Program-made: the position numbers and the translations under genes
The notes under the pieces: generated by a model
Told to the model about the DNA's origin: nothing
What the model saw: only the letters and a program-made list of their open reading frames with translations
The model's database searches: none
Part shown: positions 26,447 to 33,508 of the stretch, piece after piece
How the letters are laid out: the number at the start of each line of letters is the position of its first letter
Numbering within the stretch: position 1 is the first letter of the stretch
Assembly: GCF_000142905.1 (NCBI RefSeq)
Contig: NW_013657630.1
Location: 187,753-251,752 of the forward strand
Direction of reading: 5' to 3'
DNA from: Thecamonas trahens ATCC 50062
Lineage: Eukaryota > Protista > Apusomonadida
Length of the DNA: 64,000 nucleotides

Positions 26447-26552
26447 CCTCGCACCCTTTGCCACAAGAGATGCGTCTGCCTGATTGCTATGCCGCCCGCC
26501 TGTCGTCCCTGTCCAACCGACTCACGCGACCGACGGAATCACTTGGCGGAGT

Positions 26553-26952
26553 GGTCTGGCCGACCGAGTCATGGATGGCCTGGCCGACCGAGTGTTCGAT
26601 GGTCTGGCCGACCGAGTCATGGATGGCCTGGCCGACCGAGTGTTCGATGGTCTGACCGACCGAATCATGGATGGTCTGGCCGACCGATGGCCTGGCCGAC
26701 CGAGTCATGGATGGCCTGGCCGACCGAATCATGGATGGCCTGGCCGACCGAGTCATGGATGGCCTGACCGACCGAGTCATGGATGGCCTGACCGACCGAG
26801 TCATGGATGGCCTGACCGACCGAGTCATGGATGGCCTGGCCGACCGAGTCATGGATGGCCTGACCGACCGAGTCATGGATGGCCTGACCGACCGAGTCAT
26901 GGATGGCCTGGCCGACCGAGTCATGGATGGCCTGGCCGACCTGGCCGACCGA
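26553..26952. repeat. 24-bp minisatellite (CCGACCGAGTCATGGATGGCCTGG/A), about 16 copies
   Basis: directly visible tandem array with no spacers. Confidence 0.95.
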
Positions 26953-27010: not shown

Positions 27011-30000
27011 ATGGCGAGGGGACCGATGACGAGGTGTACATACAGAGGAAGGAGAGTGGGCCTGGCTGCGGTTGCAACTGCGGTTGCGGCGGTGGTGGTG
27101 GTGGTGGTGGTGGGTATGGTGCCAGGCGCGGTGGCCGTCCGGCGACATGTCGCCTTTGCGCCTTTGGCGGTGGGACCTGGCTCATGCACGAGTGATGATG
27201 AATGTGATCTGGGATATGTTTGTGATGGCGTCACTTTTTCCTGCATGCAACGCAATTCTGGTCGTTTTCCAGACTTGCCACTCTTGCCGCCCTTTGCTAC
27301 CGCTGCTCTCGCCGTTCTCATTGCTGTCATCGTCACCGTCTTTGCTGCTACTGTGGTATGGGCTTGCTCTGGCTCCAGACGTCCGGAATCGTTGTGGAAT
27401 CCGATGGGGATGTGTTCGATCGCTAGCGTGTTGACCATCGCGCTCATTAGTGTGGTCACGATGGTTGTGGCTGCGGTCATCCTGGCATTGGCAAGGAGGA
27501 GCGTACCGCTGCCCGACGCGGCTGGATCGGGCGAGATGTGCACGGGCAGGGATGCGCTGGCCTGCGAGCCGTTCTACTGCGATGTCCGTGTTGGACAGTG
27601 CTTCACCGAGTGCCGCAGCGATGGGGAGTGTCGATCGGGCGCGCTTTGCAAGAGCGGCGCGTGTGAGACGCAGCCCCCGCCCGAGCTCTATCTCTCGAGC
27701 AACTACGTGGCGCTAGTCTCGCTCCTCGTGCCTGTGGCGTTCTGCCTTTGCTGTGGGCTGTGCTTTGTTGGAGTGTGGCCGTCGGCTGGATCGTCGTTTC
27801 TGGCGGTACTGGGTTGCGTGGCGGTGCTGACGGTGACCGGCTTTGTGGCCATTCCGATCACGCTCACGCAGGTGAAGCGAGACATTCCACAGGCGCCGAT
27901 GCCGCCGACCAACGCCAGCGTGTGTGCCGGGAACGGCGTGTGCGCGCCGTTCCGGTGCGACGTCGGCCGGTCTGGGAAGTGCCTTGCGGCGTGCTCGTCC
28001 AACTGGCACTGTGTCCCTGGCGCGGTGTGCTCGCAAAGCGGAGTGTGCGTACCAGACGTGCCGTTGCGGGCGACACCGCTATCGATCGGCGGCGGCATCG
28101 GAGTGGCACTGGCGGCTGCGGTGGTTGTCTCGGCCGGATGCGCGTGCCTGGCACGAGCGGCACCCGAAATGGACGACCCGGAGGTGTACAGTGCCGAGTG
28201 CTGCTGTTGGGCTTTTGTGGCGGTGGCGGTCGGACTGGGCCTCGGACTCTGCCTCTTCTACACCCCATTTGTACCGTCTACGCCTGGGAGTGGGCCGCGG
28301 TGTGCGATGCCAAAGGCGCGAGTTTGCACGCCGTACTATTGCGACGTGCGGCAGCAGAGTTGCTTTACGACCTGCGAGCACAACGACCAATGTGTCGACG
28401 GGGCCGATTGCATCAAGGGGAGATGTCGGGCACCGGCGTCCACCAGCCAGCCGCAAGTGCAGGCTGTGGCGTGGTGGATGGTAGCGGCGGTGGCGTGCAG
28501 CGGCGGAGTTCTCGCCGCGGCATGTACCTGCTGCGCGTACGGACTCTTTGCGGCCGAGGTTTACACCGACAACGTGGGTCGGTTCCGTCGCTCGCACCGG
28601 TGGTGGCAGTTTGACGTCAACGGACCGATGGTGGGCATGCTGGTGACGGCGGCCTTTGTGGTTGCAACAGGACTGCTGCTGTTTATTGCGGTACCGAGAC
28701 GCAACCTGTCCGGTCTGGCACATACTGCTGTGATGAGCAATGTCAGCTGTGCCGTGCCGCACGACGGGAGATGTGCCGGGTACCTGTGCAACGCTGCGGC
28801 AGGGCGGTGCTATGCATCATGCGAGCGCGATGTCGAGTGCGGCGCCGGGTACGGGTGCACAACGGATGGGCAATGCGCGCCTGGGATCCGGCGGGAGGTG
28901 CTCGAGCCGGGATATGTTGCGGTGGTACTTGTTGCGGCGAGCATAGGAGTGGCGGGCGTGTGCGGGGCTGGCTTTGCCTGGCTCATAGGCATGGTGCCGC
29001 ACTCGCGGCGCGGAGTGGGCATCTCGGACGACGACTACGATGAGGGCTGCTGCGACCGGATGCCGGTGTTTGTGGCGACAGTGATGATGCTTGTTGTGGC
29101 AGTGGTTCTGCCGACGGGGCTATACCTCGGGTACGGGGGCGAGACGAGGGTGCCACAGGTCGACGGAAGCCACGGGGACGGCGGCATGTGCAGTGTGATC
29201 GACGACGTGCGCTGCGGCGGCTTTGTGTGTGACACTGGACTCGGTGCATGCTACACAAGGTGCAAGAGCTCGTGGCAGTGCCAGAGCAACGCACGATGCG
29301 GACGCAATGGGGTCTGCCACGAGGCCAAGGCAGCGATGGCCTGGTCTGTGATGGGCGGCTTGAGCATGGCGGTGATGGCGGGTGTGGTGGTGTGGCTATT
29401 TGTTGTGCCGCTGCTGAAGGCGTGGCAGGCCCGGCGAAGGCGTGCCAGGACTGCACGGAAGCACGCGCGAGAGCAGGCGCTGCTGCAGGCACACCGCGAC
29501 CATCTGGCGGCGGTGGAAGAGGCCGAGTTGGATCTGTCGATTCCGCGGGAGGACGTGTGGGATCCGACGGCACCGACGCCGCTGGGCGGTGGCAGCGGCG
29601 GGCGCGGAGCCTTTGCTTTCCCCGAAAGCGACGACGTGGTTGCACTGGACGAGGTCGGCGAGGGCGAGGTGGCGGCGCACACCGATCCGGTGTGCTCGGT
29701 GTGCATGTTTGAGGCGTCGACGGTCCGGCTTGTGGGCCGCGAGTGCCGACATGGGTTCTGTGCGACATGTGCAGCGTACTCGTTACAGGCGATCCTGGAC
29801 TCAAACCAGTTCCCTGCCCGGTGTCCCGGGTGCCGGGCAGACGGCGTGGAGGAGCGGTCGTACGTTGCGTCTGGGGCGATCGAGTTTCTCGTGCGGCGAA
29901 TGGTGGTGCCTGTTGAGCTCGGGCGGAGGTTTATCCGGCAGCAGATTCTGCAGGCGTTCTCGCCAGGCGAGGTGGTGACGTGCCCGGCGTGTTCGATGGT

Positions 30001-31252
30001 GTCGATGCTGCCGGGTGACCGGGCGAGTGCGGAGACGCAGAAGCGGCGAAAGGTGCACAAGAGCGGGCGGGCACTCGCGGTTGAGTGCACCGGATGCGAG
30101 ACGGCGTTCTGCGTCTCGTGCGAAATGCTCTGGTTTGATCACGACGGGCTGGACTGCGCAGGCGCGGCGGCGCGGCACGAGGCTGGAGCCGACTTTGCGT
30201 CTGTGATGGCGACGGAGGAGTACATCCGCGAGAATACCAAGGCGTGTCCACAGTGCGGAACGCGAATCAATCACTCGCGCGGACACGCATGTCACCACAT
30301 CATGCCTGGCGGTGGATGCCCGGGCCTGCGCGACGACGGGACACGATGCGGATTCCACTTTTGCTACACCTCGCTGCTCCCGTACGGCGAGTGCCACCAC
30401 GAGTCACACGGCCACCAGCTGTTCTGCGATGATCGGTGCGACTGCCCGATCTGCCCAGTGTGCGAGCCCGGGCGACCGTGCCACCAGTGCTCCGGCCAGG
30501 GTAACTGCTGGGCGTGCTTCCCGGAGAACCATCCCGATGCACGGGCGGCGCGGGAGGCAGCGGAAGCAGCTGCACGGGCAGCCGAGGCCGAGGCCCAGGC
30601 AGCAGCAGCAGCAGCTGCGGCCGCGGCGGCTGCCGCAGCCGCGCCATCACCACAGACACCACAGACGCCGCAGTTTGTGGTTGTTCCGCGGGCATCACTT
30701 TTGCAAGAGATTCGCGAGCGGGCGGCGATGGTTGCACCGTCGGCGATGTATGACGGGGTGGTGGTACCGGAGCCCGGTGATCGAGGCGTGATGCTCGACG
30801 GATCTTGCAGCGACAGCGGCGACGACGTAGTGGTGGCCGGGCCGTCGGGCGGCAGCCGGCCGGAGGGCCAGCTGGCTGGCCGGCGTGGGCTGCGGACAAG
30901 ATTCCAGCTGCAGATGGGCGGGCCGAGCACGCGCGGGCCCGCGAGCGCCAGCGGTGAGCAGCGCGTACTCGAGCTGTACTCACCCATGGCGAGCGGAGAC
31001 AACAGCGCGCGAGCAATGTCCGCAGTGGCGATGACCGGTTTCCGCGTGGAGGCACGGACGCCAGCGTCTGCTCATGGCGAGCGGCTGGCAGAGTTTGTGG
31101 CGGCCACGGGCGAGGGCCGCGAGACTGCGCAGTACTACCTCGCGCTCTTCAACTGGAACGTGGCGGATGCGATTGCCTTTCATGCGGACGAGCAATCAGC
31201 GCAGTCTGCTGCTGCACAGTCTGCCGGGGCGAGTATCCGGATGTGGGAGTGA
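27011..31252 (+). CDS. Multipass membrane protein with repeated extracellular 8-Cys modules + RBR (RING1-IBR-RING2) E3 ligase + UBA-like domain
   Basis: five full C..C.P/GY.C...C...C..D.C..G..C...G.C modules each separated by two hydrophobic helices; CSVC..CRHGFCATC..CPGC; CPAC..CTGC..FCVSC; KACPQC..GHACHHI..CGFHFCY; ERLAEFVAATG..AQYYLALFNWNVADAI. Confidence 0.85.
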   Translation: MARGPMTRCTYRGRRVGLAAVATAVAAVVVVVVVGMVPGAVAVRRHVAFAPLAVGPGSCTSDDECDLGYVCDGVTFSCMQRNSGRFPDLPLLPPFATAALAVLIAVIVTVFAATVVWACSGSRRPESLWNPMGMCSIASVLTIALISVVTMVVAAVILALARRSVPLPDAAGSGEMCTGRDALACEPFYCDVRVGQCFTECRSDGECRSGALCKSGACETQPPPELYLSSNYVALVSLLVPVAFCLCCGLCFVGVWPSAGSSFLAVLGCVAVLTVTGFVAIPITLTQVKRDIPQAPMPPTNASVCAGNGVCAPFRCDVGRSGKCLAACSSNWHCVPGAVCSQSGVCVPDVPLRATPLSIGGGIGVALAAAVVVSAGCACLARAAPEMDDPEVYSAECCCWAFVAVAVGLGLGLCLFYTPFVPSTPGSGPRCAMPKARVCTPYYCDVRQQSCFTTCEHNDQCVDGADCIKGRCRAPASTSQPQVQAVAWWMVAAVACSGGVLAAACTCCAYGLFAAEVYTDNVGRFRRSHRWWQFDVNGPMVGMLVTAAFVVATGLLLFIAVPRRNLSGLAHTAVMSNVSCAVPHDGRCAGYLCNAAAGRCYASCERDVECGAGYGCTTDGQCAPGIRREVLEPGYVAVVLVAASIGVAGVCGAGFAWLIGMVPHSRRGVGISDDDYDEGCCDRMPVFVATVMMLVVAVVLPTGLYLGYGGETRVPQVDGSHGDGGMCSVIDDVRCGGFVCDTGLGACYTRCKSSWQCQSNARCGRNGVCHEAKAAMAWSVMGGLSMAVMAGVVVWLFVVPLLKAWQARRRRARTARKHAREQALLQAHRDHLAAVEEAELDLSIPREDVWDPTAPTPLGGGSGGRGAFAFPESDDVVALDEVGEGEVAAHTDPVCSVCMFEASTVRLVGRECRHGFCATCAAYSLQAILDSNQFPARCPGCRADGVEERSYVASGAIEFLVRRMVVPVELGRRFIRQQILQAFSPGEVVTCPACSMVSMLPGDRASAETQKRRKVHKSGRALAVECTGCETAFCVSCEMLWFDHDGLDCAGAAARHEAGADFASVMATEEYIRENTKACPQCGTRINHSRGHACHHIMPGGGCPGLRDDGTRCGFHFCYTSLLPYGECHHESHGHQLFCDDRCDCPICPVCEPGRPCHQCSGQGNCWACFPENHPDARAAREAAEAAARAAEAEAQAAAAAAAAAAAAAAAPSPQTPQTPQFVVVPRASLLQEIRERAAMVAPSAMYDGVVVPEPGDRGVMLDGSCSDSGDDVVVAGPSGGSRPEGQLAGRRGLRTRFQLQMGGPSTRGPASASGEQRVLELYSPMASGDNSARAMSAVAMTGFRVEARTPASAHGERLAEFVAATGEGRETAQYYLALFNWNVADAIAFHADEQSAQSAAAQSAGASIRMWE

Positions 31253-31400: not shown

Positions 31401-31487
31401 AGTGCCAGCCAGCGCCAGTAGCATGAGTGCCAGCCAGCGCCAGTAGCATGAGTGCCAGCCAGCGCCAGTAGCATGAGTGCCAGCCAG
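31401..31487. repeat. 25-bp tandem repeat AGTGCCAGCCAGCGCCAGTAGCATG, about 3.5 copies
   Basis: directly visible. Confidence 0.9.
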
Positions 31488-31541
31488 TGGCCAGTGACAG
31501 CCCCCCCCCCCCCCCCCCCACCCCCCCCCCCCCCCCCCCCC

Positions 31542-33508
31542 ATGGCCTACCCCCGCCTCACCCGCTTACGGGTCATAGGTGCCATCCTTCTTGTCATATG
31601 GGCCCTCTCCACCGTCCTTGCCTTTGTCTCGGTCCAGCAGCCCATGCCAGGGCCACGGACCTCGTCGCACCCGCTGCCGTCGTCGACTGCCGGCGGGTCG
31701 AGGGGTGATGGGGAGGAAGGGGAGGGGATCAGCGACACAATACCGACAACAACGCCGACCAGTACACCGAGCAATTTACCGGAAAACCCACACATTTTAT
31801 CGCCCGCGCCGCAGCACATCCAGCGTCCCTCCTCGCCGCCTCCGCCTGTAGCGTCATCGCCGCCGTCACCGTCGTCGTCATCGTCGGCGTCACCGTCGGC
31901 GTCGCCATTGCCAACCTCGAGTCGACCAGATGACGGGCGAGTGCTGCGTGATGTGCACGTGGGCGGCAAAACGCTCAAGGCGCCGGCGGCAGTGGTGCTC
32001 GGCTACAATCGGCCGGCGTTTCTGGAGCGGACGTTGCGATCGCTGGTGAAAGTTGAGGGAGCGGAGCAGATGGACTTGTTCGTCTCGCTCGACGGGAAGG
32101 ACCCGGCGACGACGGCTGTGGCGAAGGGGAACGAGTTTGCGGCGGCAGGCATCGAGGTGGTTCACCATCCGCGGCTGGCGCTAGCGGCGGCTGGGACTGT
32201 CCATCTCGCAGCGCACTACAAGTGGATTCTGGACAAGCTCTTCTTCGAGCGCGGGTATGCGCACGTCATCCTGCTGGAGGACGACATGGAGTTTGCGCCG
32301 GATCTCTTTGCCTACTTTGCGGCGACGGCCGAGCTACTTGCCCGCGACGAGACCATCTGGTGCATCTCATCGTGGAACGACAACGGGTTCAAGGAGCTCG
32401 CCACCGACCCGAGAGTCCTCTTCCGGTCCTCACACTTTCCGGCCTCGGCTGGATGCTCTCGGCCGATCTGTGGCGCGAGCTCTCGCCCAAGTGGCCGGCC
32501 AATCATTGGGACCACTGGATGCGACTGTACTCGACCTCGCGCGGCCGCGAGTGCGTCTGCCCGCTTGTCGCGCGCAACTTCAACTTTGGCGACGTCGGCG
32601 CCAACATGGACCGTGCCTCGTACAACAAGTACCTCAAGAACATCGCCTTCCACGACGGCTCGCCCGTCGACCTCGGCCCTCTCGACTACCTCCTCCTCCC
32701 CAACTACGCCGCGCTCATCAACGCCTGGGTCGCCGCCGCCGCAGATCCGACCTCCGCCGCGCTGGCCACCGGCAATCTCGTCGTGCCGGCTTGGCTCCCG
32801 CCGCCGCTGGATCCCCGTAAGGTGGCAGACGCAAGGCGTGGGCGAGTGTACGGCCTCGTCGGCCCGGGCAGCAACCCGTACTCGGGCTCGACGTTTTCGC
32901 GGACAGTGCTTGACAAGCTCAAGTCGGATGCTGTAGCCGTGACCGGGGTGGAGGGCGGCAGTGGGCTAGCGCTGACATCGTTTGATCCGCGGGCGGCAGC
33001 CAGCGACAAGCTCCCGCTCGTGCACGTCATTGTTTCGACCCGCGAGGCCTTCCCGTCCCTCTCGGCTGTGTTTGGTATCTGGCACGAGGCGCGGGCGCAG
33101 CATCGGCGGGCGTGGCTCCTCTTTGCGCACGGCTACCTGTTCATCATTGTGGATGCGCGGCGATCGCCGTACGTGCCCGAGGCACACGCGCTCCATCCGC
33201 CTCCGGGCATGGTGGTTGTCGCCGGCGGCCGCGGCGAGTCGTGCACCACAGTGTGCGCGACAGCGGCGGCGGCGATGGAGGCCAACGCCACCCGCTGCGA
33301 TGGCCTCGCCTTTGACTTTATCAACCAGATCCCCGCGCTCGACGCAGCCTTCCCGTGCGCCGACTTTGGCATGGAGATCGGTGACGAGATCCCGTGCATG
33401 GTGTCGGACCGTGCCCACGAGAGCTACGGCCGGTGTCTCATCACGCCCAAGCTCCCGCTCTGTACAGCCTTTCATCCATCGACCTCACGGCTCTGTCCGT
33501 GCATCTAG
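31542..33508 (+). CDS. MGAT1: Alpha-1,3-mannosyl-glycoprotein GlcNAc-transferase I (GT13) with Cys-rich C-terminal domain; apparent -1 frameshift near 32440
   Basis: type II TM, YNRP, AAHYKW.L, ILLEDDMEFAPD, WCISSWNDNG, FP[G]LGWML, WDHWMR. Confidence 0.85.

Follow-up and report, generated by a model that had tools for sequence, protein, structure and literature searches.

The question raised by the locus at 27011..31252 of a 64,000-nucleotide stretch of the genome of Thecamonas trahens ATCC 50062, a marine flagellate (contig NW_013657630.1; the whole stretch is called the window here), is whether a single gene joins a many-pass membrane region carrying extracytoplasmic cysteine (Cys) modules to a ubiquitin ligase of the RING1-IBR-RING2 (RBR) class, and, if it does, what such a protein could do. 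Two forms of RBR ligase are known, soluble enzymes that are autoinhibited and enzymes with a tail anchor. If one stood behind a large many-pass array of glycosylated ectodomains, the idea of the receptor-like E3 ligase would reach the thioester-forming class as well, and there would be a natural system for asking how an RBR is switched on across a membrane. An ectodomain made of five small disulfide knots, each flanked by two helices, is also unusual. Apusomonads are a lineage close to the root of the animals plus fungi, and because the nearest relatives of the module are bacterial, the locus also raises the question of gene transfer into this lineage.

The answer proposed here is that the locus is probably a single genuine gene encoding a polytopic RBR ubiquitin ligase of receptor-like design, a member of a family of apusomonad-type flagellates. 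The anatomy of the protein, its family, the homology of its parts and the logic of its topology can be read from sequence comparison, and on that footing ligase activity, a location at the cell surface and a coupling of the two membrane faces are suggested. An earlier note on the window had described repeated units of a Cys module and a transmembrane (TM) hairpin fused to an RBR and a UBA-like domain, and this description is borne out by the Cys positions, the hydropathy, the Pfam matches and a profile match to ARIH1.

Gene structure and order of parts

The gene lies on the plus strand and consists of 1413 codons plus a stop, in one frame without an internal stop. The same frame is already open from an ATG at 26903, and because a minisatellite directly upstream (26552-26941, 16.6 copies of a 24-base unit) covers that first ATG, the choice between the start codons at 26903 and 27011 is uncertain; the methionine at 27011 is the start used here. 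Twelve hydrophobic segments are encoded according to a hydropathy scan, and the cysteines are grouped into a 4-Cys half module, five 8-Cys modules and a dense Cys/His region at amino acids (aa) 895-1169. The parts follow one another in the order of 12 hydrophobic segments with the Cys modules, a basic stop-transfer sequence (KAWQARRRR, directly after the last helix), RING1-IBR-RING2, a Cys/His-rich tail and a UBA_4 domain. The membrane region has no match in Pfam or NCBIfam. All of the features listed below are on the plus strand.

27011..31252, plus strand: whole coding frame, without an internal stop; orthologue P0001 covers 96% of it at 38% identity
27047..27157, plus strand: N-terminal hydrophobic segment (aa 13-49), signal anchor or signal peptide; the orthologues begin with short signal-peptide-like segments
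27185..27244, plus strand: 4-Cys half module (aa 59-78), all four Cys unchanged across 5 proteins
27284..27505, plus strand: helix pair TM2-TM3 (aa 92-165), from hydropathy and model secondary structure
27539..27664, plus strand: 8-Cys module 1 (aa 177-218), from Cys spacing
27698..27868, plus strand: helix pair TM4-TM5 (aa 230-286), with a Cys cluster at the cytosolic end
27923..28048, plus strand: 8-Cys module 2 (aa 305-346), with the sequon NAS at N301 ahead of it
28085..28258, plus strand: helix pair TM6-TM7 (aa 359-416)
28301..28426, plus strand: 8-Cys module 3 (aa 431-472); AlphaFold model of aa 425-476, predicted local distance difference test score (pLDDT) 89
28463..28696, plus strand: helix pair TM8-TM9 (aa 485-562)
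28748..28876, plus strand: 8-Cys module 4 (aa 580-622), with the sequon NVS at N577 ahead of it
28907..29137, plus strand: helix pair TM10-TM11 (aa 633-709)
29189..29317, plus strand: 8-Cys module 5 (aa 727-769)
29342..29470, plus strand: last helix TM12 and basic stop-transfer KAWQARRRRARTARKHAR (aa 778-820); a lone helix stands between the last module and the RBR in 8/8 proteins
29693..29833, plus strand: RING1, C3HC4 (aa 895-941)
29981..30157, plus strand: IBR, C6HC (aa 991-1049); Pfam IBR 27.1 bits
30245..30415, plus strand: RING2/Rcat (aa 1079-1135), with the catalytic Cys1094 at 30290-30292
30425..30517, plus strand: Cys/His-rich tail FCDDRCDCPICPVCEPGRPCHQC..C..C (aa 1139-1169), hallmark of the RBR subfamily
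30527..31060, plus strand: low-complexity linker with a poly-Ala run (aa 1173-1350)
31079..31195, plus strand: UBA-like domain, Pfam UBA_4 (aa 1357-1395)

A single gene and its family

The window gene is one of five paralogues in T. trahens, the four others having the same order of parts and lying on contigs C19, C46, C21 and C12 of the ATCC 50062 genome. One paralogue is recorded as AMSG_04901 of this strain, and the public label of the sole named family member is [quoted passage not shown]. The first, word-based homologue search returned only P0001 and missed the paralogues, which reflects a limit of sensitivity and not an absence. All parts share a single frame in the C19 and C46 paralogues. 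In C21 and C12 a frame change, which represents an intron or a frameshift, splits an upstream membrane piece from a downstream piece, giving two overlapping open frames each, and the pieces were used separately and not joined; the modules, the last helix and the RBR still share one frame in both downstream pieces. These frame changes lie at L011 2411-6756 (C21) and L010 4154-8705 (C12), and the public gene models disagree about them: P0022 splices C21, and P0033 stops C12 at the first frame. The public model P0042 cuts parts of modules out of C46 and looks over-spliced.

Three environmental proteins extend the family beyond T. trahens. P0001 (1489 aa) is 38% identical to the window protein over 96% of the query, and P0024 (1333 aa) has the same layout; both come from one Tara Oceans protist-fraction sample (ERZ908065, PRJEB4352), in which each is unbroken on its own contig. 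The third, P0003, comes from a Logan assembly and again has this layout. When five membrane regions are aligned, the half module and modules 1-5 fall into one-to-one register. The RBR tree pairs the window protein with P0001 (support 91/95) and the C46 paralogue with P0024 (99/99), from which it follows that the paralogues are older than the species split.

The junction between the membrane region and the ligase lies in one continuous frame in 8/8 cases (the window gene, the four paralogues and the three environmental proteins), which, together with the stop-free frame of the window gene, upholds the single gene that the earlier note had assumed. A scan of the junction for bacterial promoters and terminators found nothing, a result that is irrelevant for a eukaryote. 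Judged by the conservation of this layout, the locus is one real gene of a conserved family and not a chance open reading frame or an artefact of a gene model, and the family is probably a small one specific to apusomonad-type flagellates.

Membrane topology and conservation

That all of the Cys modules lie on the extracytoplasmic face and the ligase on the other, as had been proposed from the sequence at the outset, is a well supported prediction, because three independent lines (helix parity, glycosylation sequons and chemistry) agree. The number of predicted helices is even in 32 of the 33 inter-module intervals counted over ten frames from eight proteins (two helices in 30 intervals, four in 2), the single odd interval being a long hydrophobic stretch in C12 in which the crude scan counts seven, and between the last module and the RBR there is a single helix in 8/8 proteins. 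An N-x-S/T sequon occurs <=14 residues before the first Cys in 22/40 modules, where the rest of the same proteins would lead one to expect 2.6%; the nominal p-value is inflated by homology among the modules, and the enrichment is considered real because neither the position nor the sequence of the sequons is constant. As to chemistry, disulfide knots require an oxidising setting, either the lumen or the cell exterior, and zinc fingers that use E2~ubiquitin have to be in the cytosol. The positive-inside rule was also tried as a test of topology and was set aside, as it gives no discrimination here because the outer loops are long.

The earlier count of an N-terminal anchor and about 12 TM helices stands as far as the 12 segments are concerned, but the first segment is signal-peptide-like in the orthologues and looks cleavable, so that the mature protein probably has 11 helices, not 12. 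Outside the modules, the membrane region beyond the N-terminal segment has 20 Cys, and 15 of them are located at the cytosolic membrane interface, often in clusters (CLCC, CCC, CTCC, CC), which makes these clusters candidate sites of S-acylation. The sites concerned are at aa 119, 135, 245-251, 377-379, 397-399, 505-508 and 680-681 (about 27365-29053), and similar clusters occur in the paralogues.

Identity between the window protein and P0001 varies strongly along the chain, amounting to 75% in RING1, 49% in the modules (37% when the Cys are left out), about 28-29% in the helices and 38% over the whole protein, and the RBR is the best-conserved part.

The 8-Cys module

Across 28 modules from 6 proteins none of the eight Cys columns varies, which is far beyond chance, and the core of the apusomonad module can be written as C-x(6-8)-C-xP[YF]xC[DN]-x5-C-x3-C-x5-C-x(4-5)-C-x(4-6)-C. 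A profile of the module, searched against 1.84 billion representatives, matched 2025 proteins at E <= 1e-3. Beyond the family, the best matches carry this module in tandem arrays behind signal or lipoprotein-type leaders, and the two that could be placed, P0018 and P0019, sit on contigs with bacterial-type gene content. In the bacterial P0018 the profile of 28 apusomonad modules finds nine modules of identical spacing at 17-35 bits each, and many of the bacterial relatives carry Kelch propellers. These relatives are touched only faintly, mostly below cut-off, by the Pfam models DUF7107 and Dickkopf_N, and aa 171-803 of the window protein have no Pfam match at E <= 10, to these two models or to any other. 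Judged by the profile matches, the module is a widespread bacterial-type repeat that is uncurated in Pfam and NCBIfam.

Only apusomonad-type proteins among the top 150 module matches also have an RBR or many helices, with the exception of P0093 and P0144. These two are short GC-rich proteins with 2-3 modules, 6-8 hydrophobic segments and no RBR; they are fragments or else belong to a relative of the family that has no ligase. Within T. trahens, the five family genes account for 25 of the 27 module matches. Outside them the module is used most clearly on contig C22 (L034 2408-3997), in a single-pass membrane protein with CGDG..ECDDGN repeats, which resemble a Myxococcus-type Cys-rich repeat by eye, followed by one 8-Cys module and one helix; the remaining match, on contig C12, is weak (27 bits).

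An AlphaFold model of a single module, made from 37 aligned modules, reaches a pLDDT of 89 and shows a small, mostly irregular knot with a terminal hairpin. Comparison of this model with the Protein Data Bank (PDB) by Foldseek gave nothing below E 1, with draxin, knottins and Dkk4 as weak rows, and a wide VIA-align search with it gave nothing at Z >= 2. The module profile found only weak rows of scorpion and spider toxins (E > 0.04) among PDB sequences. NCBIfam, applied to the protein and its bacterial relatives, gave only a sub-threshold Myxo_Cys_RPT row and unrelated TonB rows below cut-off on P0025, and a scan of GTDB contigs with the bacterial P0018 found no relative.

The RBR ligase and the UBA-like domain

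Once the ligase part is cut out, Pfam IBR (PF01485) scores 27.1 bits against a cut-off of 24.3; zf-C3HC4 matches RING1 only weakly, at 16.7 bits, which is below cut-off. The zinc ligands of RING1 (C895-x2-C-x13-C-x-H-x2-C-x2-C-x17-C-x2-C) are all invariant in 6 proteins, as are those of the IBR, and the six-member RBR profile contains 60 invariant columns that include all zinc ligands of both domains. This family profile matches RING1-IBR-RING2 of human ARIH1 (HHARI), residues 179-382, with E 3e-11, followed by ARIH2, parkin and RNF216; the PDB matches listed at E <= 0.01 comprise ARIH1/2, parkin, RNF216, RNF31 and non-RBR RING fingers, and RNF144A is not among them. The Cys that the earlier note had put forward as an intact catalytic residue, that of GHACHHI, aligns on the catalytic Cys of ARIH1 (GGCNHM) and is invariant, with its motif, in 6 proteins; the codon for Cys1094 was checked at 30290-30292. 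Every member has a Cys-rich tail after RING2, of the form FCDxxCDCxxCxxCxPGxPC..C..C.

The C-terminal UBA_4 domain (PF14555, aa 1357-1395) scores 23.8 bits in the whole protein and 27.1 bits when cut out, against a cut-off of 21.8, and the same domain is recorded for P0001, P0002 and P0024. A search of the protein atlas returned only generic IBR clusters, at 0.81, below the level that counts.

Proposed mechanism and alternative explanations

If the protein works as its parts suggest, a signal sequence would place the N-terminus outside, and the half module and five N-glycosylated, disulfide-bonded 8-Cys knots would stand on the extracytoplasmic face, each knot stapled to the membrane by its flanking helices and the whole row held flat on the membrane. 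The last helix and the basic stop-transfer would put RING1-IBR-RING2, the zinc-rich tail and the UBA-like domain in the cytosol. The outer array would select a partner, which might be a ligand, the surface of prey or the ectodomain of an adjacent protein in the membrane; E2~ubiquitin would be recruited by RING1, and ubiquitin would be transferred to Cys1094 of RING2 as a thioester and then onto lysines, either the ligase's own or those of membrane proteins held alongside by the outer modules. The UBA-like end may bind ubiquitin or a ubiquitin-like protein, or it may keep the RBR closed. Because the outer modules would hold membrane proteins beside the ligase, binding outside would decide what is tagged, and probably endocytosed, inside. 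A one-component receptor-ligase, along the lines of the surface sensor suggested in the earlier note, in which the binding of a ligand, prey or partner to the knots rearranges the helix pairs and frees an autoinhibited RBR, leading to ubiquitylation inside, is offered tentatively, as a proposal whose chances of being correct are real but well short of even.

Several observations weigh against the interpretation of the locus as a gene for an active receptor-like ligase at the cell surface. A search of sequencing runs returned five of unrecorded kind, none of them recorded as RNA, and four of these hold the stretch at low depth; their contigs say nothing on transcription, because genic and intergenic DNA are covered alike. 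It might thus be supposed that two adjacent genes, for a membrane protein and for a soluble RBR, have been joined by chance read-through, given that the genome is GC-rich and that GC-rich DNA yields long open frames on all strands. The likelihood of this is nevertheless close to nil, since eight homologues, drawn from three or more sources, all cross the same junction in one frame, orthologues share 48-52% identity in the juxtamembrane linker itself, and a single assembled contig of one run spans 28418-29821 with no joint inside the open reading frame. In the ligase part, the RING2 of the window protein reads C-[FY]-x-S in place of the CxxC of the paralogues, so that Ser stands for its second Cys; this variant is common to the window protein, P0001 and P0004, the other members having CxxC; a 9-residue insertion in RING2 (PGLRDDGTR) is found in the window protein alone. 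The activity of this copy is less certain than that of its paralogues because of these two features, and the loss of a RING2 zinc ligand and the gain of an insertion might have left it with little or no catalysis, as a pseudo-enzyme or scaffold. Such a loss of function appears very improbable: nothing is missing from the GHACHH motif with its catalytic Cys, the identity of RING2 to that of the orthologue reaches 54%, above the 38% found overall, and the Ser variant is kept in that orthologue together with extra His/Cys residues just downstream (ECHHESHGH), which may replace the lost zinc ligand. Because the variant is conserved and so flanked, the window enzyme is probably active, less surely than its paralogues.

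The membrane region presents further difficulties. The AlphaFold model of the whole region, built from five sequences, is unreliable (pLDDT 46) and was used for its secondary structure alone, with no conclusions drawn on packing. The helices are weakly conserved and have no charged residues, and they give no sign of a dedicated transmission device; for these reasons the helix pairs are read as staples and not as a transport path, and their features fit simple anchoring as well as signal transmission. Plain anchors of this kind would also suit a cell-coat or adhesion protein, in which the outer modules build the surface layer or an apparatus for adhesion to the substrate, no ligand is sensed and the ligase controls only the protein's own endocytosis and degradation. 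The tandem arrays of bacterial module relatives in secreted or surface proteins, often with Kelch propellers, the conserved glycosylation sequons on the modules and a set of five paralogues, suggestive of a structural repertoire, are all in keeping with such a role, but the module surfaces are fairly conserved between orthologues (37% without Cys, compared with 28% in the helices), and the RBR and UBA-like end are the most conserved parts, which is much machinery for mere self-turnover; a coat or adhesion protein is unlikely, albeit a serious candidate that these data do not tell apart from the receptor-like ligase. Parity and sequons, moreover, show extracytoplasmic exposure only and fit a lumen and the cell exterior equally, and polytopic E3 ligases have so far been mostly organellar (PMC4021871), so an internal-membrane ligase of the endoplasmic reticulum (ER), Golgi or endolysosome, with lumenal modules and a part in quality control or sorting like that of the Hrd1/Doa10-type RING ligases, must be considered. 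This location is thought improbable, although the signs against it are weak ones: no ER-retention motif is seen by eye at the C-terminus, and glycosylated arrays of disulfide knots are typical of surface and secreted proteins, as the bacterial relatives are.

Downstream region

The region 31452-33508, immediately 3' of the ligase gene, contains two overlapping frames on the plus strand (31452-32936 and 32222-33508), which probably belong to a single gene whose reading calls for an intron or a change of frame.

Comparison with known systems

The closest known enzymes are the Ariadne-type RBRs. ARIH1/HHARI, the best match among solved structures, and ARIH2 have the same RING1-IBR-RING2 order, and Ariadne-type RBRs, like the window protein, contain a UBA-like domain. 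The window protein differs from them in that it has no Ariadne domain, its UBA-like domain is of the UBA_4 type and stands at the far C-terminus and not before RING1, and it adds a zinc-rich tail after RING2 as well as a membrane region of 11-12 helices with ectodomains.

RNF19A/B, RNF144A/B and RNF217 are RBRs with hydrophobic regions that are integral to or anchored in membranes, RNF19B having two helices after the RBR, and the domain layouts drawn for the RNF19, RNF144 and RNF217 proteins in reviews show no ectodomain (PMC4021871, PMC7658342). The contrast with these proteins that was drawn in the earlier note, on the grounds of their C-terminal helices and lack of an ectodomain, agrees with the same two sources. 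Where these proteins have 1-2 C-terminal helices, the window protein has its 11-12 helices N-terminal, together with five and a half Cys modules, and no helix follows its RBR; no specific sequence kinship was seen between their RBRs and that of the window protein. To our knowledge RNF19A/B, RNF144A/B and RNF217 are without any extracytoplasmic domain.

The principle of choosing the partner with an extracytoplasmic or membrane-borne part and tagging it with a ligase in the cytosol is shared with the PA-TM-RING proteins (RNF43/ZNRF3, RNF13), Hrd1 and MARCH6/Doa10 (PMC4021871). Pfam scans of the window protein found no PA domain and no RING-H2. The PA-TM-RING and polytopic ligases carry a RING-H2 or RING-CH, form no thioester, and have as ectodomain one PA domain on one helix, or none. 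The window ligase is by contrast an RBR with a catalytic Cys, so that the resemblance is one of analogy and not of membership.

On the outer side, the bacterial tandem 8-Cys proteins have the same module (C-x7-C-xP[YF]x-C-x6-C-x3-C-x5-C-x5-C-x4-C, with weak overlap with DUF7107 and Dickkopf_N), but their modules adjoin one another or are separated by fixed spacers, in soluble or lipid-anchored proteins. Helix pairs between modules are confined to the apusomonad family and the short P0093 and P0144, and only in the apusomonad family is an RBR joined to them. On the inner side, the RING2 motif and tail that define the RBR subfamily (GHACHH and FCDxxCDCxxCxxCxPGxPC) are shared with P0004, P0006 and P0007, and related RBRs were found in 16 metagenome loci, 0/16 of which have Cys modules or helix arrays. 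P0004 (GCA_041443025.1) has two faint CUB-like ectodomains, one helix and an RBR with the same Ser variant of RING2, and groups with the window ligase in the tree on a long branch; it is a second receptor-like design on the same ligase. P0006 and P0007 have an N-terminal RBR, a long middle region and C-terminal hydrophobic repeats, the inverse of the window arrangement.

The architecture had not been recognised when the sequence was first read, and a full-text search of the literature on Thecamonas or apusomonads with RBR or ubiquitin, on transmembrane RBRs and on DUF7107 likewise found no paper describing such a layout. If the protein is indeed a one-component receptor-ligase, it would represent a signalling principle not known for any RBR, derived in part from a bacterial-type module. 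Set beside these systems, the window protein is a true RBR ligase in a new context of membrane and ectodomain.

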